DNA of 64,000 nt from Thalia democratica (taxonomy: Eukaryota), in NCBI GenBank assembly GCA_965202585.1, contig OZ241827.1, positions 77,624,001-77,688,000 of the forward strand, read 5' to 3'. Below, in pieces: positions 1 to 35,240 of the stretch (its first letter is position 1; the number at the start of each line of letters is the position of its first letter). The position numbers and the translations under genes were made by a program. The notes below the pieces were generated by a model, which searched no databases, was not told the origin of the DNA, and saw only the letters and a program-made list of their open reading frames with translations.

Positions 1-79
1 AACTTATTAAACTGTGGGTGGCGTGATCGCTTTAATTTTATTAAATTTGCGCACGAAACAAATTTACTTCGTTTTTTAG

Positions 80-13600: not shown

Positions 13601-15157
13601 AAAACACATTCATTTTTGAGAAAGCAATTGATCAACTCAATCGATTTTTTGTCACCAGAGAATATCAATTTACTGCAGCTTATATCCGCCTCAAATGTAA
13701 AATATTTACTTTATATAAAAGATTTTGATTAATTGCTTTTTTTATTTTAGTTTATCTCTTAATTGTATCAGTATAGGCAACGCATTGCTGTTTTATTGAT
13801 TTTCATACACAGTTCATAGTTCAGCTTTTATAAAAACAAGTTTGAAAAGTATTTTTCTAATTTCAGGCAGAAAAGGATTTAAAATTTAAGAATAGTAAAA
13901 ATAACCTTTGTGGTTTATAACGAATTATTGTCAAAAAATTACAGGTAAAATTTTTAAAACCTAAACTTTTTAAGCTGAGAGTAACTAATGTATTTGGTGA
14001 GCTTAAACCACAAAAATAAAAATAATAACTTAAACCAATATGAATTTAATTCAAATTATCCATTTACTCAGATGGAAATAAAGATTTAATGTTCTTTTTG
14101 CATCCAAATAGTGGAAATTTGTATGTATTTGGTGAACTTAATGCTGAGAAAATAAATAAGTATCAATTAACCGTGCAAATCTCAAATGGACAAGCTACTA
14201 AATCAACACAAGTAATATACTTAGTTTAGATTTACTCAAATACTAAATGCATATTTTTTAGTGTTTAATATAATTAGAATTAAATTTATTATTCTATAAA
14301 AGGTGTAGTATTTAATTACTTTCTAATTAAACTATATGTTTACAAAACAAAGTATGTGAAGAAAGAGAAATTCTAACTCTTAGGTAACAATAGAAATTGA
14401 AGATAAAAATGATAATCAACCACGATTTGATTTTCCGATAATTCGTGTGAACTTAATGGAAAACGTCCCAATAAATAGTTTAAGAACAAAATTATCAGCA
14501 AATGATGCAGATAATCAAGCTTCGAACAGAAATTTCGTTTACAAATTAGTTGGTGCTGCAGACAAAAATAGTTTGGATAAATTTACTGTCACATCAAACG
14601 GTTCGTTTTATTCTATTGCTTATATATTTCTACTCAGTAGTAGTTTTATTTGAACAATTTAAACAGGTCAAGTAAGAACATTAAGTAAATTGAATCGGGA
14701 ACGTCAAACTAAACACCATTTAATTGTTCAAGTCTCTAATCAAGGATCACCTGATCAATTTAAGGTTAAATATCTTCTACTAGTATTCCGTTATCTTTAA
14801 TTATTTCTAATATTAAATAAAAATTTATTAGAAGTTCTAGTCTGTAGACTTTATACTTTTGTACATTTATATAGTATAAAACCATGTTTATTTAAGAAAA
14901 AGTTAAAACAAATTTGCTACAGAACAACTGTTACGTCATAATTACTTTGAATGACGTGAACGAACATACCCCTGCTTTTATCAGTCAAAATTACCGAGCC
15001 CAGTTTTTAATCGATGGTGAAAACCCTAGTTTGCCTGAAACCCAACAGGTGTATCGCATGATTGAAGGTAGCAAGTTAGGCGAAATTATTTTACTTGTAG
15101 ACGCAGTAGATGACGATATCGGTCGAAATGGAAAAATCACTTACTCTATTGTTAAAG
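4617..15157 (+). pseudogene. Cadherin-repeat exons P2-P11 of copy A (degenerate block)
   Basis: Exons 4617-4794, 5070-5200, 10167-10234, 11757-11920, 12234-12384, 12580-12805, 14072-14211, 14384-14600, 14667-14764 and 14923-15157, with matching phases. The P2 acceptor is mutated (ttttcaag vs ttttcagg in copy B). P7 has TAA 12619-21 and TGA 12643-45 where copy B has CAA and CGA. Confidence 0.8.
9642..9689. promoter_or_regulatory. Candidate intronic CSL/Su(H) site plus CRE-like site, conserved in copies A, B and C
   Basis: TTCCCACG (CGTGGGAA on the minus strand) at 9642-9649 and TGACGTAA at 9682-9689. The same pair occurs at about 49289/49329 and 58668/58708. Motif match only. Confidence 0.3.
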
Positions 15158-17424
15158 GTAAATACTTATTACAGTAATTGTAAATATATATTTTCTTGAA
15201 CATTTTTTTAAATTATAAAGACAATTTTACATCAATAGTTTGCTAACAAAAAAAAAACTCTTATAGCAAACTCACATTTTAAAATATCATATTTACTAAA
15301 CGTTAACTAAAATAGTTTAGCTAGAACAGTATATTATTGTTTCATAATAAAAAAAATACTATATAAACTTAAATGTATATTTTTGTTTAAAGAATATTCT
15401 TAAAGTTTTACTAATAATCATTATTATGAGCGTTTTTTCAAAGTTTTTGGTTTTGAATAACAAAAGGCAATAGCTCTTTTATAATTTTGTTTTCATAGCA
15501 AATATTTCGAATAATTCGAGAAATATAACTTTATAATAAGCCAAACCTAATAATAGTAATAAAAGTAAAAGTAATAACATTATTTTGACTTTAATACTAT
15601 TTTTATAAAGACCTCACCTCTATAATATTTTAATTAAAAAAAAAAGTTGGTCTTTTTAGTAAATGAAATCTTAGGTCGCTCCATTGTATAAAATGAGAAA
15701 ATCAATCTTTTCTTTACGAACTTGCGCTATGAAGTATATTTTATTATATTTTCGATTTTAAATATTTTTTTTTGCTCACTTCCAAAACACTTTCAATTTA
15801 TCCTAGACCGTATTTATTTTTATAAACTATTTGTTTTTGTATTCTAAGTGTTCTAAAATATTAAATTTTTTTTCTAATGTACTAAATAATTTATAAAATG
15901 TATAAATGTAAACAATTAGTAAATTAAATATTTTCAAATTTAAAAAGTAAATGATATTGAAATTCTTGACAAAAAAGTTCAAAACTAAACAAATTGGTTC
16001 CCTTAGTAGCATTACGTAAAAAAAAAGAATAAATGACAATTTTTGGTTCTAAGTTCTTTGAAATAAGACTACTAATTTAAAAACAGACAATGAGTTGGAA
16101 ACGCGTCAGGTTTTAGTATAACTGACAATTATATGTCACATATTACTTTGCCACTTTGTAATTACTTTATACTAACAAACACTTTCAAAAGTTAAATTAA
16201 AATTGAACATTTTAGCAATGCAAAATCATTATTAGTTTCAGTTTGTTTATTAGCTTTAGTTTTAGGCAAAATTATGAAATTTTATGAAATTAGTTTTAAA
16301 ATTAGGTTGACCTTAGTAAAGTTATACATTTTATCAGATAGTTTGTTGAATTTTTAAATTTTTGCAAAAGTTTAACCTATATAAAGTACAAGATATCCGT
16401 ACTTACTATAAAATAGTGGTTTTTAGTCCTAAAAAATCTGCAATAAAATAATTATCTTACTAGAAACATTTATGATTTGCATCAAAACAATAACAGATGT
16501 TTACAAAACTCTTAAAATCTACCTAAAACTGATCTTTTTAAACATTGAAAGTTCTGACACATAATTCAATAATCCAATTGATACCAGTCTGCATCAAGTA
16601 ACTTATACCGGTTTCAAAATAATTAGTAATGCTAATTGTTTTTAATATTTAATTACCTGTCAGATTAATCACCAATTCGTTTCCTCTGGTTTGTTAGAGA
16701 TCAATGAACAAAAATAAAATTTCGTGAGTGTCATTTAGAAAATTTAATTAGTTATTAAATTTACTTTATTGGAATTCATTATTAATGTTTATTTTAGACA
16801 GACACATGCTATTGAAAATTGTTGCTAACTAAACAGATTGAGATTTTTACTTAATACTTTTATTGTATAGCAGATTTAGGTAGCTATAAATGTATTCAAC
16901 AATTTAAAGCAAATTTAAAGAAATTAGTTTATGTTACTATCAAAAACACTATTAAAATAACAGTATATTACGTTTTAGCAATTTAATGAAACAGTTTATT
17001 AACGATGTGTGCAAATTTTCCTAGTAGACTTTAGCACTAAGTTTTGTAGAGCTTTCAAGTCCCATTATGACGTACGACTGTTGAAATTTGCTGAAAACAA
17101 ACAAAAGCACAAACTTTATGTCTGGCTCAAATTTATATTATTAAACAAATATTCTGTACTTAGGCGCGTTAAATTTATACCTAATATTTACCTTTTAATG
17201 AAGTTTTTTGAAAACCAAAGCTTTTCAAGAAATTAGTTCTTAAAAATCAGTTACTTATAAATTAGTACTGGTTTGTATTAACCTAAATTATTAATAATCT
17301 TTTTTTTTACGACATTGATGTATTAAATAAAACATTTAGTTTTATTTTTTTGTTCAAGATGTATGGACGTATATGCGTTTATTGTACAACACTAAAAATT
17401 ATAAACATAACCTTATTTTTTTAG

Positions 17425-19184
17425 GCAACAACGCTAGAGTATGGAGAATTGACGAAACCACCAGTGGTTTGAGCGCTGTCAAGTGGCCAACAATTCAAAA
17501 TGAAAACAGCGACATTGTGCGGACAAAAATTTTAACAGTAGAAGCTCGCAATGGCGGTCAAAATTCTCGCGCTTCAAGAATGAACGTTTCAATTGAAATA
17601 AGAAACTTTAGAGACAGTTCTCCTCAATTTAATAATGACGTCATTCATGTTAGCATCGCTGAAAACACAACTGTTGGAAGGTAAGATATTAACATTAACA
17701 GTATTTAGTTATCAAAAGCAAACTAATAATTGTCAATTTTTATTTCAGCTTGGTTGCCAAGGTAACAGCTTCCGGTCCAGCCGGTATATTTTATGACGTC
17801 ACAATAGGTGATTCTGATCACTTCCGGTTGGATTGGTTCACGGGCAGGGTGACTCTTTTGTTGCCGCTCGATTACGAAACTCGTCGCGATTACGTCTTGT
17901 GCGTCAAAGTGAGGGGCGGTGACGTAATGATGACATCATTAATGCAATTAAAAATTCATGTCACTGATGTTAATGATAACAGGTTAAAACTCTAACAATA
18001 TAAATAACTTAAAATTTTAACAGCGATTGTTTTACAAACAAAAGTTTTGTTGTAGTAGTATAAAACGCAAAAATACATATTTTAGGCCTGTTCTTGATCA
18101 GACAAGATATTCATCAAAAATTTACGCGAATTCATCTGATCAAAGTGTAACGTCGCAATTATTTGACGAACAAGGTAACGTCTTAAAAGTGGAAGCGCAT
18201 GATATAGATACTGGATTAGGGGGATCGCTTAAGTATCAAATAATTGCTCTCTCATCTGAAGATCAGGATTTCATTGATGACAAATTTTTAGTGGACGAAA
18301 GAAGCGGTGCTATTCTGAAACTTAATGGAAACCTTCTCTTTGACCATTCTTACAATAACATCTATCAATTCATGGTAAAATTAGTTTTTTTAGTGTATAC
18401 GTTAAGAAAAATAGTTAAGTTAAAGATTTACTTTGATCAGTTATAGTGTTTTTTTTAATTAAACATTTTTATTAAGGTTCAAGTGACAGACAGAGGAAGT
18501 CCTCCTCTTGTAGCAACTGAAAGAGCTTACGTCACTGTACAATCAATTTCTCATTATTCTTTAAAATTTGCTAAAAATCGCTATACGGTAGAAGTACAGC
18601 CACCTTTTGTGCCTGGATTTTTGATTCCAGTAAATTTAGAAGTCGTTGAAAACGGCTTCAATTCAAAATCAAAGTTAGAATACTCAATAGAGCCGGAAAA
18701 CTCATATTTTGAAATAAACAGACACAATGGCGAAATTAAAACATTTTCAAATCTAATTCCACATCAAAAAAAAACAACACTAAATGTAAAAGTATCAACC
18801 AAAGAAACTAGTTCTTATACTATTGTCAAAATAGTTCTTCTTGAACCTTATAGTGGTGATCTAAAATTAAAAGAGATATATGTCGAAGAAAATTTAAAAT
18901 AAGTATGTCAGTATAGTTTCATAACACATTTATTTTTAATTCAAATTAAACAAAGATCTAATTCTGACGAATTGTGTATAAGAACTTTACTATTTTTCAA
19001 CCTTTAATAAGGATTTTAAATTTTCAGGGAAAAGCATTGTATACATTGGCAAGTATTCACAACACAGTAGATGTTGACTGTGTTTACACTTTATTGAATC
19101 CAAATCCACATTTCAACGTTGTTGGATCTGCTATTCTTACCACCAATGTAACACTAGATATCAGATACAAATTCTTATCATAAA
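17425..19184 (+). pseudogene. Cadherin-repeat exons E12-E16 (contain a nonsense codon and a frameshift)
   Basis: Exons 17425-17680, 17749-17982, 18086-18374, 18477-18902 and 19028-19184. E15 ends EENLK-TAA|gtatgt. E16 is 157 nt between two phase-0 junctions, with the frame changing near LDI..DTNSYHK. Confidence 0.8.
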
Positions 19185-19322
19185 GTACGTTACAAATGAA
19201 TTAAAAAACTAATGTCAATATAATTAACATAAACCAAATAAATTTAGATTTATCACTATACTTTAGTTTTATTTAAGTTGTTGTATATTTAAACTATTAA
19301 CAAACAAAATTAAAACTTTCAG

Positions 19323-22300
19323 CTGTTAGTTGAAACAAATTATCCAGCTTCAAGTCGAAGTAGTCGAACTGAAATAAAGGTAAATGTCGTAGATGTGAAT
19401 GATAATGCACCTGAAATTTTACAACAACCGATTAACATATTTATACCTAGAAATGGTAAAATTGGAACAGCTGTCAAACAGGTTAATATTCATTTAGGTG
19501 ATATAACGTATTTCAAATCAAATTTAATATTTGATTTAAGGCTAAATATTTATTTTACTACAATTGTTTATAGAATACTAAACAAACATATCTCCAGATC
19601 AAGGCAATTGACAGAAGTTTTGGTCCAAACTCCCAAATTAAATTCAGTTTGAACGGTCCTGGTACTAAATACCTGAGAATAAATCCTAAAAGCGGATTGG
19701 TCACCACCAGAACTTACAAGTCACGTGAAGTCAGAACGACTAATGACGTCACGATAATCGCGGAAGATCAAGGTAAACCCCAATTGCGAAAAGAAGTGAA
19801 AGCGACTTTGCACTTCACAAACGGAAACCCGCTTTCAAAAGAGGTGAAATCCCCTGTTTTTGTAAAAGCGCGGGAAAATTTACGCATAGGAAGTTTAGTG
19901 ACTGATGAAATTGGATCGCAGTTTACAGATTCTGTTGAGAAAGCAAATTTTGAAATTGTTGATGGAGATCCTGAAAGTAAATTCCAAATTGATTTTAAAA
20001 CTGGTAAGTTATTATCTCAAATTAATTTTGAATACAATATAATTTCTTTAAAAAATGAAATGAACAAGCGATTGTTACTAAACTAATTGTTATTTAAAGT
20101 AAGCTATAAAAGTATTATAAAAAACTAGTAGTTTTCTTGAATATAAACCACTTTTTAGGAGCTTTATATACTCGAAAAAGTTTGGATAGAGAAAAACAAG
20201 ATACTTACCAGTTACAAGTGAGAATATTAGAACAAAACAGAAACTCAATCGCTTCAGTAACTGTTTTTGTTAATATTCAAGACGAAAACGATAATCCACC
20301 TATTTTTCAAAATAGCTTTTATTCAGTAAACATTAAAGAAAACTTGCCATCTAAATCGTTTGTTATCAGAGTAAGTTGATGTTAACTAGATATTTTTTTA
20401 TTAAAAATAAAGTTGTTTTAAGTTTTAATTTATTTATGTTATAATAGTTTTTATTTACAGTATAATCTGAGCTATACTCAACAAACTTTTCTTAAAAGAT
20501 TGATTGTGAATGTGATCATGAATTTTTTACAGTTTATTTTATCCTTTAATTTTGCTGTAACTCAACCTTAAGCTATACAAATGACATTGTTTTGCCTAAA
20601 GTTTGAAGCTTAAGTTTTAAAAGTGCGCATGAAATATGCGATTTAAAAATAATAGTTTTATATTTATTTAGGTACAAGCTACTGATGCAGACATAGAAAG
20701 CAACGCAATGATCAAATATACAATTCTATCCGGACACGAAAGTTTCGAAGTTGATGAAAATAGCGGAGTCATATCAACATCTGGTAATATTGACAGAGAA
20801 GAAGTTTCTCAGTTTATATTTACAGTAAGAGCAAGTGATTGTGGAAACCAGTCAATGTTTTCAGATGCTGAAGTTGTTGTTTTTGTTGATGATGTTAATG
20901 ATAATCCTCCATTTTTCTCTAATGTAAGTGTTTTTGTTAAAGTAAACATATCAGTGGAACCTTAAAAGCTCATATTTTCGTATAAAGTAACTAAAATTCA
21001 CGATTTTTTTTTCAATGGTTTATGTTTAAGTTTTTATTATTATTATTTTTACTAGAAAGTAATGTCTTAAGAAGAACTTAACCTTTAGTAAAATGTTATT
21101 AATGCAGAAAAATGAAGTGTTATCTGTATGCACTCTAATTGAGCCTGGATCAAAAATAGGTCAAGTAAGAGCTTACGATTTAGATGTTACTGATCAAAAT
21201 AGTTTGAAATACTTCATTGAAACTGATGGTCCAATAAATATAGATAAGGAGTCAGGTTTGCTAATTTTATAAAATATTATTTTTATGAGTGTTCATTAAA
21301 AAACAATAAAGTTGAAAAAAATTAGTATGCAAAGCTTATAAGTTATATAAAATACTCAAATTTAAAATTTACTTATAAAATTTAATTTCTACAACGTTTC
21401 TACTTACAGGTGAAGTATTTTTAAATGATCTAACTGAACCATATGAAAAACGAAACAATATTTATGCAATAACAATTGTTTCTGATGGAGTATATTCCAC
21501 ATCTACTAATCTTCAAATTAAATTTGTTACTAAATCTGCACGAGTATTAGAGTTTCATGATTGCTCAATTATGTTGAAGCCTAAAGTTTTCCGTATAAAA
21601 GAAGATGTTCCAATAAACACTTTTGTCGGAAAAGTAAGTATACGCTAGTTTTAAGATACTTGGTTTAGTATTCCTATATTTTAACTAATATTTTTCAGCT
21701 AAATTTATCATCTGGTTCTGTTAATCCAGTAATATTCACCATTGAAACGACAACTTCTGATTCTTCTCGATTTAGGGTAATTCCCTCAACTGGAGAGTTG
21801 TTCACTCAAGATTCCATCAGAAGAGAGTTTCTCACATCTACAAATGACATCATAAGATTTGTTGTTACAGCTCAGTCGAGCTCAGGTTTGATAATTGTTT
21901 AAAACTAATTAAATGTATATAAAAAATTATGCTAAATTTTGGTTTTACCTTATAGTTTTAAACAACATACCTGATTATACTAGGTTAATTTCTTACTAAA
22001 ACGTCTAATTGGTTTATATATGATACTAATTTGACATAGACTTATTCAAAGATAACAACAAATTACGCTATTAATTAAAAAAAAATGTTTTGAACTATTT
22101 TGATATATTGTTAATTTAATATATTCTCCTAGTTTATGTAACTTGTATACATATGTTACAGAAACTAAGATAACAAAACAATTATTGTATATGTTACAAC
22201 TTATTGAAAAGTTATTCGTTTACAGATATAGCAAGGTGTGAGACTGTTATTGTTATTCAAGACGTCAACAATAATAAACCTGAATTTGATAGAAAAAATT

Positions 22301-25300
22301 ATCAAGGAATTGTCGTAATTAATCAAACGATTGCCGGTGAACACTTACTGAAAGTTTGTATTTTGGTTGTTAATTTTACAATTTATTATAATAATAAGAA
22401 GGATTTGTACTTATTTGAAACTAAAAAACTAATTATGCAATAATTTAAAAGATAAAAGCATCAGATAATGACATTGGAGTGAATGGAAAAGTATCTTACA
22501 ACTGGTACGATAAAAATAACAATGCTTTTCAATATTTTGATACTATTACTGATAGTGGAATAATCTATTTGAAAAAGCCACTGACGGAAAAGGGTTTAAA
22601 TTGATTTTTTTTTAATTCAAGTTTTTATTATAAATATGATTGATTAGTTATTTAGCTTATAAAAGTGGAATTGAAATAATATGTGCATATATCAGTTTAT
22701 TTTATTTGTTTTTCGTAATATAAAGTTAAATATTTGTTGAATGTCTCAGTCGTGAAACGAACGGAAGTTTTAAATTGAAGCAGACATTAATAAATAAGTA
22801 AATTTAACACCTGCAACAATAAATTTATTGTCTGAAATAATTTTACACTTACTACTTATAAACAGCACAGTTGCAAACAATTGGTTATTTTGTTGCAGAT
22901 GAAGAAAGTTTTAGTTTTTTTATTCAAGCAATAGACGGAGATGGGAAATATTCTCTTGTTGGAGTGAATATTAATGTTATTTCAACAACAATTCAGTTAC
23001 CAGTTTTTGAAAAAAGCATAATAAACGTTGTTGTACCTGAAGATATAGCTATACGATATAAAGTAAGTTTCCCATTTTTTTACAAATTGTCTTTGTATTA
23101 TTAATCGTTAAATAAACTATGAGTATGCATTGTGACGAAAGAAACTTTCAGAAATAAGTTGAACAGTAAGTCACAAAATATTATATTTATTTCAAGTGTT
23201 ATACAAACATTTAACTTATATTTAAAAACATACAATATAAGTTGAAATAGTAGAGAATAAAAACTGATTAGATTTAATTTATATACTATTCATTATAGAT
23301 TGCTCAACCACAAGCTTTAGCAAAAAACCGAGAAATTTACTACAAATTTGCAAATCATCAAGGTAATTACTTTTATACATATCAATGCTATCATAATAAA
23401 CCATGATAACTTGGCAATAATTTTTTGTCAAGTACAAAACTGTTAAGTAATTTTTGAAGTTTTTGTTGAAAACTATTTAAACCAAGTGAAAATTTTTGCT
23501 AAACAATAAAGTAATAAAGTTGAAAGGTATTCAATGAGAAAATAATCGTCATAACTAAGTTACAAATATATGATAATAAAACAAACAGATGGTGATGAAA
23601 CACAAACGAGAAACTTCAAAATAAACAAACTGAATGGAGCAATTACCCTAACACAAGAGTTAGATTATGAAAATAAAAATTATTTTGAGCTTATTGTAGT
23701 TGCATATGTAAGAGAAGAAACTGAACTTATGGCTGAATCTAAAGTAAGAAAAACTTTCTTGAAGTTTTAAAAAACTGTTTAATTGAAGTAAACAATTCAA
23801 TTTCAAAGAAATTATACTGTTAGGTTTAATAATATATATTTGTAAACAACACAAAATATATTGCTTATTCAGATAACAATTGAAATTGAAGACATAAACG
23901 ACAATCCACCTCAGTTTGATAGTCTTTCATATAAAACTTTTGTTGTTGAAAATAAATTGCCATATGAACCGCTTGTACAAGTCAAATGTAGTGATAAAGA
24001 CTCTACAAAATATTCAACTATCAAGTATAGGTAACGATTTGAACTAAAATACCAAATATTTATACTGTCTTTTTTAAAAACTAAAAGAAACTAGATACTA
24101 CATATAAATTAGATTTCATTTAATTGCTTTTTGTTGGCAGTAAAGTGTAAAATTACTGAAGTTAACTCAAATGAATTTAATTAAATTTTCGTAAATAAGT
24201 TTAGTTTAGTTGATAGTACTGCTTAATTAATAAAATATAAAACAACACTGAGTTTTGTAAACTGAATTATTTTTTTTCAGGTTCAATGAAAGTCATCCAT
24301 CTTTTAATATCAACCCAGTGTCTGGGATGGTTTCCCTGAAAAAATCTCTGGACAGAGAAAACTACATTGAAACAAAAGGAACAATTAGTCTCAAAGTGTC
24401 TTGCACAGACGGAAAATATGTTGATAGTTCAAACATAATTGTCACAATTAAAGATGTTAATGACAGAAAAGCTGTGTTTAAAACCGACTCAAACCAGTTT
24501 AATATTTCTGAAGGGTAAGTGTTGTATAAAAACTATAGAAGTTTAAATATTTATGTGGTCAAACAAAATTATTTTTTTTGTTTCTTTCAGGGCTAAAGCA
24601 GGATACAAAACAGCATCAGTAATGTCAGCGGTAGATCAAGATTCTTCAACAAATGCTTCACTTGTAACAACAAGTATTATTAAAGGAGATCCTCTTCATT
24701 ATTTCGATGTGTTTTTTCAATCGAAACACTCTTTAGAAGCTTCAGGAATGTACTTAAACATTGGATTTGAAGTAAGGATTTGCTTATGTTTAAACTTAAA
24801 TGCTTTGTATTACAAAGTGTTGTAATAATTCTTCTATTCTTAGGTTGCTAATGATATTGATTCAAACATTCCTGATGTAAATGAAGTTACTGTCTCAGTT
24901 TTTGACGGAATTCATCACTCTTATGCACAAGCTACTATAAACATTGTAAACCGAAAGTACAAACTACCAATTGGAAAACCGCTTTGCAAAAAGGTCGACT
25001 TCTTTTATTCCACTTTAGTTACTACGTTTTATACTTAAAATAGCTTTACAAATTAAAAAAATACATTATTACAAGATATAACAACTATATGCTACGGTCG
25101 TTAAATACATTTTATTTTTTTACAGCTTTTTTACAACGTATCTGTCAATGAAAACAATAAAGTAAACTCACAAATAGCTACAATCGACATTGCAGACAAA
25201 TATAGTAAAGCTATTTACACTTTGATTGGAGAATTTAAAAATAGATTTTCATTCGATGAAAGTACTGGTTAGTAAAACTTTAAAAGTAAACCAACAGTTC

Positions 25301-26844
25301 TATAACTATAATACTATCTAAATATACTTTTTTTAGGAATAATTTATGCGACTGAAAGTTTAGACAGAGAAGAAAGAGATAGCTACCACTTAAACCTTCA
25401 AGTTAAGTACTCGAACGATTTAAAGTGCCTGATACAGGTAAAAAAAATTAAAACAACTAGATTAATTAATCATTCAAAAAAAAACGATTATGTCTTACTC
25501 AAACTTATTTTCTAGATCTTTATAAAAGTGTTAGATGTGAATGACAACTGGCCAACATTTACAAAAAGTCAATTGAGGGTTCGTGTAAAAGAAGATTCGG
25601 TTGTGGGAAGCGTTGTTTGTCAATTTGCTGCATTTGATGCTGACATTGGTTTGTTTTTTGAAATCAGCTACAACTACCTGAATAAAAAAATAAACTTAGT
25701 TTAAAACAAAATAAAAAACATTTTTTTAAGATTATTTTTTGTTTCCAAACTATAAATAAGTTTAAAAACAAAAAGACACATAGTATTTTATTTTAACTCC
25801 TTTAACTAACATTTTAGGTGAAAACTCTCAACTGAAATATGCTCTACAACGTCACAGTTTAGATTCAGTTCCTTTTGAAATTGATGAAAAACATGGTTAT
25901 TTGATATTACAAAGACCCGTTGATCGTGAAATTAGAGACAAATACCTTTTCAACATTACTGTTAGTTAAATTTTTTCTTGAAATTCATATAACTTTAGTT
26001 ACAATTTTAATAAAGTTTCTTAAGCAGTTAAAGCTACAATAGGTGAAGTTTTATTTTGTCGACTAAGCTGAAGAAAATTGGCAAACATGCTTTGATTTTC
26101 AAACATAGAAAAATATTGTTAACTCTATACACGAGATACAACTATAGTTTTACTATAATTCTTTTTAAAGGTAAAAGACCAAGGGATTCCAGTTAAGTCA
26201 ACATCAGTTCAAGTTAATTTAAGAGTAACAGACGTGAATGACAATGCTCCTGTATTCAATCAAACAAGTGTTAGCTTTCAGTATTTAAAATGTTTTATGA
26301 CTAAAAATCCGTTGACCGTTACTTATTTACCATAAATTTTACTTTACAAAGAGTGGTGTGCTTTACTCTAACAAAATACAAAATTTAATAAAGAAACCTT
26401 TTAATTGTATAATTAATATTAATCGACTCTTTTTTTTCAGTACAAAGCTGAGGTTAAGGAAAGTGCCAAAATTAGCCATCTAGTGGCAAAAGTTGAAGCA
26501 TTCAGTTTAGACGATGGAGTAAATGCGGATTTGCAATACCTCATTGTTGGAGGAAATGAGCTTAACAAGTTTCAAATCGACAGTAGATCAGGTATAAGAG
26601 AATGACTTAAAAAATAACTACTTAAATCATTTATATAGTGACAACATTCAAATACAACTTTCATTCAAATACAGGAGAAGTTGTTCTTCTTGATGAAGTG
26701 GATTATGAGATGAACAAATATTTTGTGTTGACAGTCCGGGCGCAGGATCTTACAGATGACCCACTTATGAGCGACACTTCTCTCAACATACGTGTCATTG
26801 ACGTCAATGACAACAAACCTACTTTTAACAACATCAATTTTCCT
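19323..26844 (+). CDS. FAT1/FAT3-like: Uninterrupted cadherin-repeat exons E17-E39
   Basis: Exons 19323-19481, 19598-20003, 20159-20370, 20672-20923, 21108-21255, 21410-21633, 21699-21885, 22226-22353, 22452-22593, 22899-23062, 23299-23362, 23589-23743, 23873-24030, 24281-24514, 24591-24771, 24844-24993, 25126-25267, 25337-25437, 25516-25648, 25818-25960, 26171-26269, 26441-26591 and 26675-26844. All are GT-AG and phase-compatible with no stops; motifs include SLDREKQD, QDENDNPP, ELDYENK, DVNDNAP. Confidence 0.85.
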
Positions 26845-27024
26845 GTGAGTATAAACTGTTTGAATAAAAAGGTTTAAATAAAAAGCTAATGTCTTTTGTC
26901 TTTCAAATTAAAGATATTCGAAAGTCAACTATTATTTATTATTTTGTAAAAAGTTCAAATCTGGTCATAGTTCGTGCTTAAATCGTAATTTAGATTCAGT
27001 TTTCAAACAAGTTGTTATTTTCAG

Positions 27025-27947
27025 ATATTCGTCAATGAAGATATCATTGATGACGTCGTAGCAACGATAACTGCTTTCGACAAGGACCAAGGCGCAGGGG
27101 GCGAGGTCAAGTACTCGTTGCTAAGCAACGAAGCGGACCAGCTGCCGTTTCAATTGGATGAGGACAGCGGTCGGCTGTCAGTGGTCGAACCAGGTCTGGA
27201 CTTTGAAGCCCGCCGTTCGTATGCCTTTGAAGTAGTTGCCAGGGACAACGGAACTCCTTCCCTAGCAACGAGCGTCGACGTCGCTGTCAAAGTGAGAGAC
27301 GTCAACGACTGTCGACCGCGGGTGGCGCTCAAGAGTTTGCATGACAACGTTGCGTTGCGTTGTCAAAGTGACGTCACGACAAAGTGCACTGCGAGCGTGT
27401 CGGAAGCAGAATGGAGAAACTTTTTTTTCGGAGGAGGGCATAGTAACGGTGGGGGCGACGGATAATGACGTTGCCAAGGGAAACGCGGCCCCTTTTAAAT
27501 TTAATCTCGACTCACAAATAGCAGGTTAAATAACTTGTTTGTTTTGTGTATACATTTATTTAGCTCAAACTTACTTATATAAGCATTTTAAAAAGCCCAT
27601 TTCAACTTATTAGTTAATGTACGGTATATCTTTTTATACATGAAACATAATTTTTTTTTTTTTTTATGAAGAAAAAATTAAAATAAAGTCATAGCTTAAA
27701 CCAAACACTTTTCTTTTAACAGGTGAATTTGTTTTTAATGACAAAAATGTGCTGATATCAAACAACCCGTACGAAATAGAAGACATTTCATCAGATAAAG
27801 CGGCTAAAACGTTCCATTTCACCATAACTGCTACTGACAGTGGAAATCTCGAATCTTTGCCTCTTTATTTAGAAGTTGTCATTTTGAAAGAAAGCAAGTA
27901 TCCACCGGTTTTGATCTCTCAAAAGATTCAAATTATGACTACTGAAG
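27025..27947 (+). CDS. FAT1/FAT3-like: Late cadherin-repeat exons E40 (27025-27524, one frameshift) and E41 (27723-27947)
   Basis: E40 is 500 nt where 3n+1 is needed. The frame switches between ...TASVSE and FFSEEGIVTVGATDND (27403-27428, which includes an 8-T run). E41 is in frame. Confidence 0.8.
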
Positions 27948-28138
27948 GTTTGTTCAAATATAAACTAATTTCGAGTATTATAAAAGGATTTTATTATAAC
28001 AACCAACATGTATACACGAAAAGATATATTAATAATTACCCAAACTTAGCTACCTTTTATACGACGGTCTTTATTTTACTGAATTGAATATTAATTATTC
28101 GTCTTAAACTAGTTTTTAGTTTTACTGTTCTGTTTCAG

Positions 28139-29889
28139 ATTACTTCAAAGGAGGAGTGATATCCTCAAAGCTGTACGCCACCGACAAGGACCCCAACGAC
28201 TTGCAGCGGCTCACTTTCAAGATCGACTCGCTCGCCGACTTCGAGTCGTTCACGGTGAACCCCCTCACCGGCAAGCTGTCGGCGACCAATGGCGTGCGAG
28301 GTCGCCACAACGTCACGATTGGCGTCAGCGATGGCAGCAGGTACTCGACGGGCCGGGTCGCCATCGAAGTGGTGAAAATTTCAAAGGAGTCGATTCAGAG
28401 TTCGGTCCAGGTCACTTTCGAGGGGATTTCCCCAGAAGCGTACCTTTCGACGGTTCACGGCAAATTTTTAGCGGCCCTCGGTGACATTCTTCCAAGGGGT
28501 TCGAACCCCGGTGAAAATGTGGAAATTTTGTCCTTGAAACGCATGAATGATTTCAATGCCCAGCTGGTGTTCAGCGTGAGGTCGCCGAAGCGTGAAGGCC
28601 AGTACCTGAAAGTCGGCCGCCAGCTGAAAGACTCGCTGCCGCTGCTCACCGAGAAGGCGGGGGTGAGGGTTACGGACGTCAGGGGGGAGGAGTGCGACCT
28701 CGAGTGCGCCCACGAGTGCCGGCACGACGTAATTGTGACGTTATCAGGGGAAAGTCCCGTCACCACGAAAAAGTGGAGCTTGCTGACCCCTCATTGGTTC
28801 GAACGCGAGGAGAAGTGCGTGTGCAGGAAAGGTCACGCGGGTGTGAATTGCGCTTCCGTTTGCGCTGGAGTAACGGACGTGTGCGAGGAAGTTGGCGGAA
28901 AGTGCGAGCTGGACGCGAACGAGGTGCGAGGCTACCGGTGCGCGCAGAAGAACCGAAGGAACAGCGCGGTTTCTTTCGGGGGAAATTCCCTGATCGAGTA
29001 CAAGCTGAACAACCCTGAAGTGTTCAGTTTGTCGCTGAGGTTCAGAAGCCGGCAGCGCGACGCAAAACTGCTGGAGGCCGCGGAAGAGTCGGGAGGCAGC
29101 TTGGCGCGCGTCAGCGTCGACGAAGGGAAACTGAAGCTGGAGTTCGCGTGCGGGTTGGACGGCGGAAACATGCAAACCATGGAAATGAGCGAGTCGGAAA
29201 TGAGCGACGGAAACTGGCATGACGTCACAATCGAACCCATTTCCGACAAAGATTGCGCTTATAGGTATGAAGTTTTTATTAATATTTACCATTAAAATTT
29301 TTATCAAGATTTTAATTGTATTTTCGTAAAAAACTTATGCTTGTTACTAGTAAGATATACTAAGTGATAGTTTTCTGGCTTAGAGTTTTATATTAGCTGC
29401 TTACTCTTATTATAACGACTTTTATTAATGCTAAAACATAACTACAAAAGATTGCGCTTAGATGTATTTAGCTTTAGTTTTCTATACTAGTTATTTAGTT
29501 CTTTATCAGTTAGTTTTATATGCTTTTCTTTGCTAACTGTTAAAAAGCATGCAATGGATCTAATTTTACCAATCAAGTTACGACATGCTATTGTTAGTAA
29601 ACATTTGCATGTACTATATATTGCTATATATTAACTATAACTAATTTTGATTATTCTAAATAAATTTTTACAGGTTGGTAGTAGACAGTAAATACGAGGC
29701 TACAGGAGCATTGGGTGAGAACAAAAAAAGAAAGTTGAAATTTGACAAACTTACACTGGGAGGATTAGATAAAAATAATGATGGTATGATTGGATGCATT
29801 GAAGAAATTAAAATTAACCAAATTTTAATTCAAGATCTTCTTCATTACAATAAATTGAGAATTACTAAGAAACAAGAAGTTCTTGATAG
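28139..29889 (+). CDS. FAT1/FAT3-like: Last cadherin repeat, non-cadherin/Cys-rich segment and laminin G domain (E42 28139-29264, E43 29674-29889)
   Basis: ORF 28156-29295: GGVISSKLYATDKDPND..., SVQVTFEGISPEAYL (Fat-type membrane-proximal segment), Cys-rich CVCRKGHAGVNC, then SFGGNSLIEY..LSLRFRSR..DGNWHDVTI and LTLGG..GMIGCIEEIKIN (LamG). Confidence 0.9.
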
Positions 29890-30089
29890 GTTAGTTTCTG
29901 TTTCTATACTCTTTATACGTTAGAAGAATATATGGTTATGCTAAATAAAAACTATACAAAATTCCTACTATGTTTTAAGAAAATGTATAAATCTAACTAT
30001 TTTGATGCAACATAGACATTTAGTTTTAATAAAATGAACTTCATTGAAGTATCAATAAACAATATGTTAAAATCTACCTAATTTTTCAG

Positions 30090-30629
30090 ATGTAGCATGG
30101 ATATTGGGTCTTGCGTGAATCATTTTTGTAGCAACGGCGGTAAATGCGGACTAGACATGTCTTTAGAGGGAAATTCCCCAATATGCAAGTGTAGTTCGGG
30201 TTATGCAGGGCCTGATTGTCGCAAAAGGAAGGTTTGTGAAGACTTGCCGTGCAAAAATAAAGGAATTTGCCATTCACAAGCTGTTGAAAGTTTTAGGTTG
30301 GTGAAATTTAAAATAGTTTTAGTTATTTCCTCGAATATTCAATACTTATTTTAATAAAAAAAGCTTAATCTGTTTTACAGATATGAACTTAATGTTTTTA
30401 TGAACTTGTTCTTTGCTCACTTTTAGTAATTAGTAGTACTTTACTTATAGGATATAAAACCATTAGTTTTATCATTATCACAGATGCGAATGTAAAGAAG
30501 GTTTTGGAGGAGAATTTTGTGACGTCATATGCAAGGAGGGGTTCACCGGAGTGAATTGTGACGTCATAATAAATAAATGTTTCAGTTACGATGAAAATTT
30601 TGCTTGCAACTGCTCTTTATCAAATGAAG
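30090..30629 (+). CDS. FAT1/FAT3-like: EGF-like repeats (E44 30090-30296, E45 30484-30629)
   Basis: CVNHFCSNGGKC..CKCSSGYAGPDC; CEDLPCKNKGIC..RCECKEGFGGEFC. Confidence 0.88.
30491..30568 (+). repeat. In-frame 39-bp (13-aa) tandem duplication in EGF exon E45
   Basis: tgtaaagaaggttttggaggagaattttgtgacgtcata / tgcaaggaggggttcaccggagtgaattgtgacgtcata = CKEGFGGEFCDVI / CKEGFTGVNCDVI. Confidence 0.8.
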
Positions 30630-31299
30630 GTAAGCTTTTTTACTATGGATATTTGCTTTGGATGTAGTAATATGTAACTACAAGCAACAAACTAATTTTG
30701 ACTGCAAACATATTCTAAAATTTTTATTATGTAAAAAATTTGCTGCTAATAAACGTAAAGTTTGAAGCTTTCATGAGAAATGCTTAAACATTTTTTTTTC
30801 ATAATATGTAAAGTTTATTGAAATAAAACACTATCTTATCTTAAAAAGACGTTATTTACTAATATTAAACATATATGCTTTTAAAAGCTTAAGACTTTAA
30901 ATTTCAACAGCAGTATTATAATCAACTACCAAAGTATAATTTGTTTAATATGGATTCTTAAAGACGACTTTATCGCTTGTTTATTAAAACTAATCCTGTT
31001 GTTTAAATAGGGATGTATTTTTGTCACGCAATATTTCTTTTTTTTGTATGTCACGCAAAAACTTACAAATCTATTATTTATTGAAAAGTAATAATAAGAA
31101 CGTAATAAAATACTATTTATTAGCTGTATGTGTAAAAAAATTATAAAAAAGTAGCATAAAAAGTACGTAGTTGAACTTGTAAAATTCATAGAAAAAAAAA
31201 GCTTAAACAATTGTAATGGTTTAAAATAGCTTATAAGTTCCAAGTTTAAAAGTTTTAGTTAAAAACTTCAAATCAACAAAATAATAATGATGCTAACAG

Positions 31300-31515
31300 G
31301 TTGCAAAACTATCCTAGAAAATCAGACTAACGCGAAGAAATCATCATTTCCTTATTTAATCCTCATAATTATTATTTTAATCGTCATAATCGTTGCCACC
31401 ATAGCAACTGCAGTCGGCTGCTACGTAAGAAGGAGGCGAGGAAAAAGAATGCGAACCGGAAGTACTATTTCCACTAAAGAAAAGTTTTATTTGACACAAC
31501 TGAAACACAGAGAAG
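31300..31515 (+). CDS. FAT1/FAT3-like: Transmembrane exon E46
   Basis: FPYLILIIIILIVIIVATIATAVGCYV followed by the basic stop-transfer stretch RRRRGKR. Confidence 0.9.
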
Positions 31516-31627
31516 GTTTAAACAGTTTACATTAATTAATTTTAAAGTTTATTATTATATAAGTCTTTGAAGTTTAATTCACTAAAAGCAGAAATATTAA
31601 CGATCTATAAAATGGTTTATTTCATAG

Positions 31628-34600
31628 ATCACTCGTCAGATGGAAACCAGTCGATTCCAAAGCCACCGATTCCTGCAAGACCTGTTGATTATCAGAGATG
31701 TTCAAGAGAAATTATTGACAGCATGGTTGAACAAGTAAATATAATTATTATTATATATTCAGTTCTTAGTTTACAGTTTGCATACTTCTAATTACTACAA
31801 TTTAACTATTTAATTATCTGTTTTTAAAAAATTTTCAGTTGAAAACCAACAATGAAATCAACAATTTATCATTAAAAAAATTAATTACATGTTTTAAAAT
31901 AATTTTTCAGGAGCTAAAGAACAGGAAACAGTCAAATGACGTATTCGACAAAAGTATGACGTCATTCCAGGACAATGAAAAATTGACGTCATACCAGGAT
32001 AGTGGAAAGCTAACGTCATTGGCTTCCGATTCAACTTCGTTTCAGAAAATTCCCATGTCTTGGACTGACTATGAGCACAATCATGTAAGTAGTATAATTG
32101 TTAACACCAAAAATATTAGCTCAATTTGAAGTTGTTATTTCTGTTAATTAATTATTATAGTTCACACCTGTAAACTGACACAATGGTTATTATATTATTT
32201 TAACTATAATTAAAAAAAAATACAATCTTTATATTTATAAGTATGATTAAATAAAATTTTAAGTTATTGTAAGCTTTCACTGACTGTTCATTAAAACTAT
32301 AATAACTTTTTTAAGTAGATATTTAATTTCGTTTAAACAAAATGCTTCAACTAATTTTTAAACCATCACAGTTCAGCGGAAGTATATCTGGTTGTTCGTC
32401 TTACAGCAAAAGAACTCCGATCCCGTCTGCGAAATCACCGAAACTGTTCACCAGGATTCCCAGATTTCAGCAGCAGTCAGTTCACAAAGTAGCAAGCAAG
32501 CAGTCCATTGCAGAACAGCGTAAGTTTTATAACAGTAGTCGAGTGGTAGTCAGGCGTAGATTGATTCTTTATTAACTTTTTCAGTTGACTTCCTTGTTTT
32601 ATATATTATTTTAATACACTTTTCTATTTATTTTTAGCAGTGTTTTAGACTCTAATAATAATATGATTTTTTTGGAAAACATTTAAAAAATCCAATAGTT
32701 TTAAAGATTTTTTTTTATTTGAAAAACATGTTAGTTCTCACTTTTTAAAATTCTTATAATGTAAAATTTTCTTTAAGACTTGATCTCTTATCATGTATAA
32801 TTGTTATTAAATTAATTCAATCACTGTTTTAAAATTTTAACAGTATGTTAGCTAGACGTAGATATACACTGATTTTGTTTTAATTTTTCAGTAAAACTTT
32901 ATAATTTTTAGATTTTCAAATTTTTAACATTTATTTTACTTTATTGTATCTTTTGAAAAAATTTTTGATTCGTAACGTATTTTTATTACAAGATATACTT
33001 ACAAGTTTAAAAATTTTTAATATCTAATTTCAGTTCTAAACAAAGTTAAAAAAATATTAATTTTTAATTAGAACATCTTTAAAATGTAAATTTTGTAACT
33101 TTGTTTTTTTTTCTCACTGTTTTCTTAACTAAAATTTGTTTAACCACAGTTTTGTAATTCTAAACAGTTGGAAGAAAACCAAAAAAATTGAATTTAGCAG
33201 AATTCAACCGTAATACAGGTCTATAAATAAAAAGCTTGGTTATGGTGTTTTTTGTACAAATTTAGCATGTACTCAAAAACGTGGTGTTAATCATTATAAT
33301 AAATAACTTCAACTGTTTTTTTCTGAAATTATCTGAATTTTGAAAGTTACTTGTTTATGCTAACTTTCAAATAATTTAACATGAAAGACTTAAAATTACA
33401 TAAAACATTGAAAAATAATTTTGATTTCATATAGCTAGGTATATCCAGTTATAAGCTTTTGCTTTATGTTTCAAAATTTAAAGATAAGTATGTCAACTAT
33501 TATTATCTATCCTGTTATACTTAGTGGTTTTACATATGTTGTACTGTTGTTTGTTTTTAAGTTTCATTTTAAAACTTTCATCTAAATGAAAAATTTCTAA
33601 GTTTACCATGGTTATTAAAAAAATTTAATGTTAAACTTTATTGTTTAATGTTAAAACTTTTAATGTTAGTAAAAGTGTTAATTTATCTGGCTTCAAAAAT
33701 TTTTAGTTTTTATTCTAAACGTATTTTTTTAAACTCAAATGATAACACTTATTTTAACTGCTCTTCATTTTTAGCATGTAAATTATTAAGTTGTGATGAA
33801 TTTTATATTTCGTACAAAACAAAAGTTATTAATGGTTTTATTAGGCTGTTATTTTGTAATTCGAAATATAACTTGTTACTTTTATTACGAAATCTCAAAG
33901 CATGTTGATAAATCTCATAGCATGTTGTTTTTGCATGTGTATTATCATGTAACTTGCATTTATTTCAGTATGTTATATTAGGTTTTTCTATACATGTTTT
34001 TTTTTTTACAAGAAGTTGTTTTATTAATTGCATATTTTGAAAAGAAAACTAGTTATCTAAATATTTAATAAAATGATTCTTAAGAACCGATTAACTCTTT
34101 AAACTCAATGAGAAAATGTTAACTTTTTATTTTTAACTTAAAAAGAAACTTTAAATAAGTTGTAAAAGTCTCTAAAACTCAATTATAAAATTTGACGAAT
34201 CCTTTTTAATACTTAAATAATTTTATTCACCAGATTACGCATGGGACGTTTCTGATTGGATTAAAAACAACTCGTCGGCGGCCAATCACGTTCCTGAACA
34301 CGTGACGTCAGTACCAGTGAGGCTGAACAACAGATCCGACGGTGTGACGTCATCAAACAATCGCGTGACAGCACATTACAACTTGGCTGGTAGAAAACCG
34401 AAAAGGAAGGGGAGAAAATGCAGCGACGCTTCCACAACAGATTCAAAACTGGTTTGTATAAATTTATAAACTTAAAAAGTTTTATAAGTATAAATATATA
34501 TATCTAGACACAAAATAGACAAGTGAATGTTGATAAAACTAAACATTTGAAGCTTTTATATAATAAGTATATAAATATTTACGTAAGTTACAAGTCAAGA

Positions 34601-35169
34601 TCATTAAATGACAAAGTAATTATTTATTAGTTTTGATTCGAGTATTTATTTTTTCAAACCAGATACGTCATCCGCAAGACGACGAAAGCTCCCAGTATGA
34701 CGTCAGTAGCGAGGTTACGACGGCTGCCAGGCAACCCGGGCGCCTATTACGTAGCAACTATGACGTCACCAACCCCCGATTCGAACCTTCGAACATCCTG
34801 CCATCCGTTTCCATGGAGCACGAGCGTTTCTCAATGGACGAAAAAATCTCTGAGGCCTCGGAGGATTTCTATGACGACACGGACGAGTACGAAATTTCCG
34901 CTCCGATGCCCACCGACATTATGACGTCACTTTTGGAGGGCGAGATGGAGGTGGACATGCCGACTCCGGCGAGGGCGCGCAAAAACAAGTTTCACCCCGA
35001 CCAGTACCTACCCGCCGTCGTCACCATGGCAACCAGTTCCTCGTCGTCGGTCGACGGTGACGTCACTGTACAGTTGCTTGGCAACCAGCTGCAGATGTCG
35101 TCGCTTTCCGACTTGGAAGAAGATGACGTCAACAATTCGTTGATGTTACGTCATAATGACAACGCTTGA
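31628..35169 (+). CDS. FAT1/FAT3-like: Cytoplasmic-tail exons E47-E51, ending at TGA 35167-35169
   Basis: Exons 31628-31734, 31911-32084, 32372-32519, 34234-34451 and 34663-35169, all phase-consistent. Motifs PPIPARPVDY, HYAWDVSDW (spanning the E49/E50 junction) and KFHPDQYLP. Confidence 0.85.
31956..32024 (+). repeat. In-frame 27-bp (9-aa) tandem repeat, about 2.5 units, in cytoplasmic exon E48
   Basis: atgacgtcattccaggacaatgaaaaa / ttgacgtcataccaggatagtggaaag / ctaacgtcattggct = MTSFQDNEK / LTSYQDSGK / LTSLA. Confidence 0.75.
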
Positions 35170-35240
35170 AAAACTTTACTTTTGAGAAACATTCCCTCTT
35201 TTCTCGTTTTCAGTGTCGAAGTATTTTTGCTGCTGCTTGA

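Follow-up and report, generated by a model that had tools for sequence, protein, structure and literature searches.

An exon-limited palindrome, TGACGTCA, in the coding sequence of a Fat-like cadherin gene of Thalia democratica

The cadherin gene and its copies of the palindrome

The window, by which we mean the whole 64-kb stretch of Thalia democratica DNA analysed here, carries the 3′ part of a Fat-like cadherin gene (cadherin repeats, laminin-G, EGF, membrane span and tail) together with cadherin pseudo-exons in copies A, B and C, the last of these an old duplicate. Nine splice junctions of the gene model are backed by metatranscriptome contigs; a 37-nt “intron” at 27397-27433 was dropped from the model, as a relative's RNA runs straight through it, with one letter missing at 27422. 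No bZIP gene was found in the 64-kb window. An exact search retrieves 18 perfect copies of TGACGTCA, each at a coordinate already listed in an earlier, sequence-only reading of this DNA, and together with the gene model it bears out the assignment made there: 17 lie in coding exons of the cadherin gene and the 18th (63615) in a pseudo-exon of copy C. Window shuffles that keep dinucleotides (n = 100) give a mean of 0.38 copies and a maximum of 2. For comparison we used relatives L001 to L006, L008 and L009, sequences from Tara Oceans marine metagenomes and metatranscriptomes; a scan of JGI metagenome contigs found no further ones. The features are as follows, with the flanking amino acids given for each exonic copy.

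301..15174, + strand: copy A cadherin pseudo-exons; no perfect TGACGTCA, one-letter relics at 668, 14931 and 14952
17425..35169, + strand: Fat-like cadherin gene, 3′ part (gene model; 40-41 exons, 8904 nt CDS; Pfam Cadherin, Laminin_G_2, EGF)
17636..17643, + strand: TGACGTCA, N-D-V-I; 37 nt from exon 3′ end; imperfect in L006, L008 and L009
17794..17801, + strand: TGACGTCA, Y-D-V-T; 45 nt from exon 5′ end; retained in L006 and L009
19744..19751, + strand: TGACGTCA, N-D-V-T; mid-exon, with an E-box palindrome, TCACGTGA, 23 nt upstream
20159..26591, + strand: 20 consecutive exons without TGACGTCA; 3186 nt CDS; GC3 0.11-0.41, near intron GC
26799..26806, + strand: TGACGTCA, I-D-V-N; cadherin D-V-N-D-N linker; 38 nt from exon 3′ end
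27369..27376, + strand: TGACGTCA, S-D-V-T; exon 27025-27524, a single exon by its contiguous RNA contig
29220..29227, + strand: TGACGTCA, H-D-V-T; laminin-G part; 37 nt from 3′ end of a 1126-nt exon; retained in L005
30520..30527, + strand: TGACGTCA, C-D-V-I; EGF exon; 36 nt from exon 5′ end
30559..30566, + strand: TGACGTCA, C-D-V-I; EGF exon
31957..31964, + strand: TGACGTCA, M-T-S; unit 1 of a 27-nt tandem repeat
31984..31991, + strand: TGACGTCA, L-T-S; unit 2 of the same repeat, of which unit 3 (32011) reads TAACGTCA
34303..34310, + strand: TGACGTCA, V-T-S; tail; retained in L001
34345..34352, + strand: TGACGTCA, V-T-S; tail; L001 reads TTACGTCA and has gained a perfect copy 21 nt downstream
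34698..34705, + strand: TGACGTCA, Y-D-V-S; 35 nt from 5′ end of the last exon; perfect in L002 and L003, TGACGTTA in L001
34761..34768, + strand: TGACGTCA, Y-D-V-T; tail; retained in L001-L003
34922..34929, + strand: TGACGTCA, M-T-S; tail; retained in L001-L003
35058..35065, + strand: TGACGTCA, G-D-V-T; tail; retained in L001-L003
35124..35131, + strand: TGACGTCA, D-D-V-N; tail; retained in L001-L003; CGACGTCA in the distant L004, which differs synonymously
63615..63622, + strand: TGACGTCA in a pseudo-exon of copy C; the corresponding site is TGACGTGA in copy A (14952), TGACGTTA in copy B (54318)

The frames of the gene model confirm that the reading is D-V at 12 exonic copies and M/L/V-T-S at five, and that just one, 26799, is a cadherin D-V-N-D-N linker. 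One unit of the 27-nt tandem repeat at 31957 is missing in a relative's RNA. The copies are unevenly spread, and the block of 20 exons without the word is improbable by chance (binomial P = 5e-4). The introns of the cadherin gene (8.8 kb) contain no copy, as the sequence-only reading had said, but composition predicts only 0.03 there, so that the absence is uninformative by itself; what counts is the contrast with the 17 copies in 8.9 kb of exons, to which the excess over composition is confined. The variants reported at 1910, 9682 and 10621 are present. The description of the genome as CpG-poor was wrong: the observed/expected ratio of CpG is 0.93 in the window, 1.26 in GC-rich exons and 0.75 in introns.

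New relative to the sequence-only reading are the copy-free block of 20 exons, the turnover of sites at stable density, the decay of copies in pseudo-exons, the lack of GC spill-over into introns beside copies, the symmetric flanks, and the scarcity of wobble variants and of cross-intron partners.

Excess over protein and codon controls

Base composition predicts ∼0.10 copies in the CDS, an excess of ∼170-fold; the 100-fold enrichment claimed earlier stands against base composition only, the excess over codon-preserving controls being ∼6- to 14-fold (∼3-fold for the strictest control). Six kinds of CDS shuffle, 2000 of each, keeping amino acids, codons and dinucleotides, gave 1.2 to 5.5 copies with a maximum of 11, and 0/2000 reached the observed 17; dinucleotide-keeping shuffles confined to single exons fell short as well. 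Among 8-mers TGACGTCA ranks first (z = 12.8), the runners-up are all shifted versions of it, and each of its 24 one-letter variants occurs at most twice in the CDS, as compared to 17 for the perfect word. No other 8-mer comes near, CpG-containing ones included, for which equal enrichment had been raised as a possibility. A synonymous T precedes in-frame GAC-GTC in 13 of 16 cases (5.6 expected, P = 1e-4). The signal thus acts at the level of nucleic acid rather than protein, as had been proposed, and is tied specifically to the perfect 8-mer.

It is also exon-limited and bends the protein sequence. Places where the protein permits the word are themselves in excess (23 of D-V type with 6.3 expected, and nine of x-T-S type with 2.8 expected), 17 of these 32 are filled as compared to 1.5 expected, and the codon after GAC-GTC begins with A in 15/17. 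One might ascribe the copies to protein composition, or to codon or codon-pair habits in the GC-richer exons, given that cadherins are rich in D-V-N-D-N and that GAC, GTC and ACG are favoured in GC-rich exons. There is next to no chance that this is so: for the cadherin gene it is refuted by the shuffles, the permitted-place count, the 8-mer ranking and the flank test, in which the preceding T and following A are enriched even given the codon pair, and the word occupies 1/8 cadherin linkers as compared to 10/14 other D-V places.

Exon borders and splicing

Both TGACGTCA and the raised GC end sharply at intron borders, even within the densest cluster: sequence 51-100 nt away from a copy has a GC of 0.47 where it is exonic and of 0.19 where it is intronic, as compared to 0.215 in distant introns. 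Such sharpness tells against a reader of DNA, whose site need not respect exon borders. No copy lies at an intron edge in the cadherin gene. Word density rises with exon GC3 (rho = 0.63, P = 9e-6), and we found no link between exon GC3 and the GC of flanking introns (rho = 0.19, P = 0.24).

An RNA-level signal of exons, in which UGACGUCA is bound by protein in the pre-mRNA as a splicing enhancer or as an exon-definition mark where exons and introns alike are AT-rich, would suit the strict exon limitation with its sharp borders, and a turnover of sites like that of splicing enhancers. It would also suit a possible edge bias: 2.5 copies are expected in the zone 30-50 nt away from exon edges and 7/17 are found there (P = 0.005, for a range picked after seeing the data), which leans toward a splicing or RNA role and away from a DNA-level reader. 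We nevertheless consider it rather unlikely. The word is missing from 26/40 exons, five of which are confirmed as correctly spliced by RNA contigs; six of the 17 copies lie >100 nt from any junction, and the last exon holds five. Presence of the word showed no association with weakness of the splice sites or of the pyrimidine tract (acceptor P = 0.12; donor P = 0.07, with the trend in the opposite direction), and neither the word nor any one-letter variant of it occurs within ∼16-20 nt inside either end of the 39 introns. The motif-free exons, the splicing of five of them and the unrelated splice-site strength rule out a general need for TGACGTCA in splicing, and a reader of single-stranded RNA leaves the perfect palindrome with its symmetric flanks unexplained.

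A signal read only after splicing, in the mature mRNA (for export, stability, localisation or translation), would account for the exon limitation and the high synonymous GC, as both the word and the elevated GC at third positions end exactly at exon borders and word density tracks GC3. We regard it as improbable, because such a signal could sit without cost in the untranslated region, yet the highly conserved ∼150 nt after the stop codon contain none; the dense part and a 3.2-kb copy-free part belong to one mRNA, and here too the palindrome and symmetric flanks are unexplained.

Turnover among relatives and decay in pseudo-exons

Single sites come and go between relatives while the density holds steady, a pattern that resembles clusters of binding sites. 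In the closest relative, L001, 2/7 sites differ, and its new copy came about through a cluster of three changes, which recreate the ten letters found at another copy. Against L002, the third-codon-position letters of the word are all kept (15/15), only modestly above the synonymous background (0.84, P = 0.07), which for this gene tells somewhat against a selected site.

Where selection is relaxed, TGACGTCA decays toward AT. Between copies A and B, codon positions 1 to 3 differ by 4.9%, 3.8% and 4.7%, close to the 5.2% of introns, and in these neutrally evolving pseudo-exons the word survives in decayed form only, altered chiefly by GC-to-AT changes. The one perfect pseudo-exonic copy is that in copy C.

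These observations leave a slim chance for a non-selective origin, be it a mutation, repair or gene-conversion bias or a CRE-type (M26-like) hotspot with GC-biased conversion. Consistent with it are the tracking of exon GC3, the copied letters of the new L001 site and the presence of the M26-type heptamer ATGACGT on one strand in 14/18 copies. However, introns and other non-coding DNA show no excess, the neutral pseudo-exons lose the word rather than gain it, and hotspot motifs are expected to erode, not accumulate. That GC does not spill over into the introns beside copies argues against an origin in recombination or mutation, and on this ground regional GC-biased conversion or a hotspot was rejected. 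The motif-directed mutational bias and recombination motif suggested earlier accordingly find no support, introns at 51-100 nt from copies being as AT-rich as distant ones and the pseudo-exon copies having decayed.

Flanks, palindrome and pairing

A purine precedes the word at 16/18 copies and a pyrimidine follows at 13/18; with five independent sites of relatives added, these become 21/23 and 18/23. We take these R-...-Y flanks to be the R-TGAC half-site form of bZIP sites. The self-complementarity of TGACGTCA points to a double-stranded target, which could also be formed by RNA, with copies pairing to bridge introns or fold exons. This is slimmer still as an explanation, although 12/17 copies are in close pairs, 17636 and 17794 stand on either side of a 68-nt intron, and 26799 and the variant TGACGTCG (27051) on either side of a 180-nt intron. 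Only two or three of the seven edge copies have a cross-intron partner (29220, 30520 and 31957 have none), L006 retains a single member of the 17636/17794 pair, and the flanks of paired copies do not consistently extend the helix. The 15 wobble-tolerant variants are rare despite AT pressure, with seven exonic copies altogether. With wobble variants and cross-intron partners so few, a reader of double-stranded DNA, such as a bZIP dimer, fits slightly better than a reader of RNA.

A putative second signal over the genetic code

An excess beyond protein and codon habits, together with upkeep by selection, amounts to a second signal overlying the genetic code. The reading that we prefer, and hold tentatively as quite possible but short of probable, is that selection maintains R-TGACGTCA-Y as a cis-element across the coding sequence of working exons, with a homodimeric bZIP of CREB/ATF type as its likeliest, putative reader. 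Such a dimer would bind the double-stranded DNA of the gene body. Exons would be where GC-rich sites can persist in a genome of 22% GC under strong AT pressure. Five of the eight letters are fixed by the protein as well, and what non-coding DNA retains are AT-shifted forms alone, for instance TGACGTAA and TTACGTCA. The bound factor might boost or license transcription, or mark the chromatin of exons.

More doubtfully, though we think it worth considering, salps and their close relatives may use an exon- or gene-identity code, in which one exact palindrome in the coding exons of host genes, bought at the cost of amino-acid changes, is read by a specific factor and sets working exons apart from AT-rich, repeat-filled DNA. 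If true, this would be a gene-marking layer without described counterpart in animals.

Comparison with known systems

In the literature, including the salp genome papers PMC5174732 and PMC10686999, we found no description of TGACGTCA in exons. Signals that overlap codons are known, yet they are usually weak, degenerate and disputed, whereas here one exact 8-letter word stands out, with effects on the protein sequence and upkeep across several related species. So clean a case offers a single system for testing directly what, besides the ribosome, reads codons; ignoring the word would bias codon models, selection tests and gene finders on such genomes.

The closest likeness is to the cAMP response element (CRE) bound by CREB/ATF bZIP dimers, which has the identical 8-bp palindrome, symmetric R/Y flanks and ACGT core, and for which, as here, one-letter variants rank far behind the perfect word. 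Classical CREs come one or a few at a time, in promoters and enhancers; by contrast, the gene model places 17 copies in predicted coding exons that make up half a gene, the introns between them being free of the word. The fission yeast M26/CRE meiotic hotspot, where Atf1-Pcr1 acts on ATGACGT, shares the core heptamer within coding sequence (14/18 copies here), but adjacent introns bear no footprint of GC-biased conversion and the word accumulates instead of eroding. In teleost fish, complementary repeats at intron ends bridge introns, and where self-complementary words closely flank an intron, as they do in some cases here, they could likewise pair; unlike those repeats, most edge copies have no partner and wobble variants are unused.

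Known exonic splicing enhancers occur in most exons as short degenerate motifs, for the most part rich in purines (PMC6169883, PMC4868121). TGACGTCA resembles them in its exon limitation, synonymous-site selection, turnover and possible exon-end bias, and differs in being a perfect 8-nt palindrome that 65% of exons lack and whose presence shows no relation to the strength of splice sites. Exonic enhancers and dual-use codons (“duons”, eExons) involve many factor motifs with modest excess (PMC4745165, bioRxiv 10.1101/2021.09.06.459186). As in those, a regulatory DNA word, putative in our case, shares its letters with codons and limits the choice of synonymous bases and, beyond that, of amino acids; unlike those, it is a single exact word, at 6- to 14-fold over codon-preserving controls.

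Gene model and inventory of the palindrome

The 8-nt palindrome TGACGTCA, a CRE/ATF site, occurs 18 times in the window, and a sequence search places the perfect copies exactly where the sequence-only reading had listed them (17636, 17794, 19744, 26799, 27369, 29220, 30520, 30559, 31957, 31984, 34303, 34345, 34698, 34761, 34922, 35058, 35124, and 63615). The window is very AT-rich (GC of 22-28% outside exons), and 100 shuffles of it that preserve dinucleotides contain on average 0.38 copies and at most 2. Among window 8-mers with four G/C letters the palindrome is the commonest, the runners-up being its own one-letter shifts.

The window holds the 3' part of a Fat-like cadherin gene on the + strand, with Pfam domains Cadherin, Laminin_G_2, and EGF. 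Our exon model, produced by dynamic programming over open frames and GT..AG sites, has 41 exons (17425-35169, CDS 8904 nt), and nine of its junctions are confirmed by contigs from four marine metatranscriptome runs. Coding exons of this model contain 17 of the 18 copies, in the frames described earlier (12 as D-V and five as M/L/V-T-S); the copy at 63615 lies inside a pseudo-exon, the exon-like part of a duplicate discussed below.

Exon junctions confirmed by RNA (+ strand, exon end/next exon start)
First five: 27524/27723, 27947/28139, 29264/29674, 29889/30090, 30296/30484
Last four: 30629/31300, 31515/31628, 31734/31911, 32084/32372

The 37-nt "intron" 27397-27433 of the model is not real, since RNA of a close relative is contiguous there. 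At 27422 the window has one letter more than that relative's RNA contigs, which disrupts the reading frame of exon 27025-27524 and represents an assembly indel or else a genuine frameshift allele. In RNA of a relative, exon 29674-29889 is joined to the next with three extra letters (CAG) compared with a near-identical run (window 29887-30091), which could come from alternative acceptors separated by 3 nt or from a difference between species. A 27-nt unit repeated three times at 31957-32037 encodes x-T-S-... and carries the perfect palindrome in two units and TAACGTCA in the third. RNA of a close relative has one unit fewer; copies of the palindrome can therefore multiply through tandem duplication. 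The E-box palindrome TCACGTGA occurs at 19721, 4682, and 44287 (three occurrences, two of them independent, too few for a test), always in an exon or pseudo-exon and once 23 nt upstream of the copy at 19744.

Excess over codon and protein controls

The excess survives the tests that had been proposed to refute it. When synonymous codons are permuted, 1.2 copies are expected over the whole CDS, 1.5 within two classes of GC3 (GC at third codon positions), and 2.8 within exons, as compared to 17 observed; with every dinucleotide preserved as well, the three figures rise to 2.2, 2.7, and 5.5, and the maximum over all schemes, at 2000 shuffles each, is 11. Nor are other CpG-containing 8-mers equally enriched: the palindrome ranks first (z = 12.8 relative to such shuffles), and the words that come close to it are shifted versions of itself. 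Each one-letter variant occurs at most twice in the CDS. How large the excess is depends on the reference chosen: it is ~170-fold relative to base composition, 6- to 14-fold relative to codon-preserving controls, and ~3-fold relative to the within-exon control, which is deliberately over-strict.

The flanks of the 17 in-frame GAC-GTC pairs allow a test independent of the codon pair itself. The preceding purely synonymous base is T in 13 of 16 informative cases (5.6 expected, P = 1e-4), and the following codon begins with A in 15 of 17, compared to 34% of all codons (P = 6e-6). Overall, the protein permits the palindrome at 32 places, and it is present at 17, where codon usage in the respective exon class would give 1.5. 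It is not simply using D-V pairs offered by the protein, because it occupies only one of eight cadherin D-V-N linkers, where D-V is demanded by the protein, as against 10 of 14 other D-V places. The permissive places are themselves in excess, with 23 of D-V type (6.3 in shuffled protein) and nine of x-T-S type (2.8; P = 0.0015), which bears out the earlier suggestion that the palindrome shapes the protein: many of its D-V and T-S pairs appear to owe their presence to the palindrome. We conclude that the excess is real, resides at the nucleic-acid level, and is upheld by selection.

Decay in neutrally evolving pseudo-exons

Duplicates of a stretch of cadherin exons provide a control for selection.

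Duplicated cadherin-exon stretches and one-letter relics of the palindrome
1-15190: copy A, with the cadherin-exon stretch at 220-15190
39715-54560: copy B, ~95% identical to A, introns included
57540-63840: copy C, older and partial, 66-73% identical to A
668 (A), 40163 (B): relic TGACATCA
14931 (A), 54297 (B): relic TTACGTCA
14952 (A), 54318 (B): relics TGACGTGA (A) and TGACGTTA (B)

Divergence of the cadherin "exons" between A and B is 4.9, 3.8, and 4.7% at the three codon positions, similar to the 5.2% of the flanking introns, and copy B contains stop codons; the evenness across codon positions and these stops indicate that the cadherin exons of A and B evolve neutrally. The part matching ~14202-14525 of A is missing from B, and A/B identity falls after ~15190, as had been noted from the sequence. 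No perfect palindrome is found in the pseudo-exons of A or B, only relics whose changes are mostly from G or C to A or T; at the site matching 14952/54318, copy C retains the perfect form (63615). The palindrome thus decays without selection, which speaks for selection linked to a working gene, as opposed to a process that generates the palindrome.

Composition along the gene

The genome had been called CpG-poor, but CpG observed/expected is 0.93 for the window, with 1.26 in GC-rich exons, 0.79 in AT-rich exons, and 0.75 in introns. Exon GC3 spans 0.11-0.74 within this one gene, and density of the palindrome tracks it (rho = 0.63, P = 9e-6). No copy occurs in 20 consecutive exons (20159-26591, CDS 3186 nt; binomial P = 5e-4), a block where GC3 is close to intron GC, as though its synonymous sites were under free drift. 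The GC-rich exons 27025-27524, 28139-29264, and 34234-35169 are also CpG-rich and include the three longest exons.

GC-rich exons are sharply bounded (flanking intron GC 0.26, compared to 0.21 at other exons), and exon GC3 shows no significant correlation with flanking intron GC. At 51-100 nt from a copy, intron GC is 0.19, as against 0.215 far away, while exon GC at the same distance is 0.47-0.48. Because intron GC is not raised near copies and the borders of exon GC are sharp, forces that act regionally, for instance GC-biased gene conversion near a hotspot, are ruled out.

Turnover of sites among relatives

Orthologous exons of related taxa were taken from short marine metagenome contigs. 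Of the five last-exon copies, four are perfect in each of the three relatives L001, L002, and L003 (87-94% identity); at the remaining one, 34698, L002 and L003 also have the perfect form and L001 has TGACGTTA. L002 and L003 have an additional copy where the window has TGACGACA. Third-codon positions within the palindrome are unchanged in 15 of 15 cases relative to L002 (background 0.84, P = 0.07), which is no more than suggestive of conservation above background. In exon 34234-34451, L001, the closest relative, keeps 34303, has lost 34345 (now TTACGTCA), and has gained a perfect copy 21 nt downstream of the latter through three clustered changes. L005 retains 29220 within the 1126-nt exon and shows a second copy at a site that reads TGACGTTA in the window. 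Across exons 17425-17982, both L006 and L009 retain 17794, and 17636 is perfect in neither; at one TGACGTAA of the window, L009 has a perfect copy. In the distant L004 (64% identity), none of the five last-exon sites is present, but it has one of its own. Density is thus stable while single sites turn over, the pattern expected of redundant sites under stabilising selection.

Directly past the stop codon, ~150 nt (35170-35320) are almost unchanged across four related taxa, even in L004, with its coding part at just 64% identity. The stretch has three predicted hairpins, with no covariation because there is too little variation, and no match in Rfam; we regard it as a candidate for a conserved element in the 3'UTR of the Fat-like gene.

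What reads the palindrome

The palindrome is self-complementary, which implies that its target is double-stranded, namely DNA occupied by a dimer or RNA paired into a duplex. Its flanks are symmetric, with a purine before 16 of 18 copies and a pyrimidine after 13 of 18 (21 and 18 of 23 when five independent sites of relatives are included), which is the R-TGAC half-site form known for bZIP sites. The reading that we prefer, tentatively, is that a bZIP protein may bind it on DNA. Under strong AT pressure, a GC-rich 8-mer would survive only at places where five of its eight letters are constrained by the protein as well. Exons would thus become the places where target sites of a DNA-binding dimer accumulate, with nothing but AT-shifted relatives of the palindrome left in non-coding DNA. 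The hybrid forms TGACGTAA and TTACGTCA together number 14 in the window, ~8 of them independent, with ~1.9 expected by our own composition estimate; they may be decayed or AT-shifted relatives. They lie at 1910, 9682, 10621, and 55874, plus duplicates, several in non-coding DNA.

Counting against bZIP binding on DNA are the sharp limitation to exons and a possible exon-end bias (seven of 17 copies 30-50 nt from an edge, 2.5 expected, P = 0.005, with the range picked post hoc). These same features lend something to a signal in pre-mRNA read by a protein, which we consider less likely than binding on DNA. A general splicing role is itself unlikely: the palindrome is missing from 26 of 40 exons, five exons without it are covered by RNA contigs and spliced correctly, splice-site strength is no different, and neither copies nor one-letter variants occur at the intron ends of this gene. 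A signal in mature mRNA is more doubtful still, and the remaining readings are graded lower again. Among these, pairing of copies in an RNA duplex predicts tolerance of G-U and partners across introns, but the 15 wobble-compatible variants total only seven exonic copies, the edge copies 29220, 30520, and 31957 have no partner, and L006 retains only one of the pair 17636/17794.

Comparison with known systems

The salp genome papers PMC5174732 and PMC10686999 do not mention the palindrome, and full-text literature searches found nothing. Conceptually closest are exonic enhancers and dual-use codons (PMC4745165; bioRxiv 10.1101/2021.09.06.459186), exonic splice regulation (PMC6169883), and selection on codon usage for reasons other than translation, the subject of a general review (PMC8410138), but a single exact palindrome at such excess is described in none of them. 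The palindrome is the canonical form of the cAMP response element, yet its placement and number of copies here are unlike any described use of that element.
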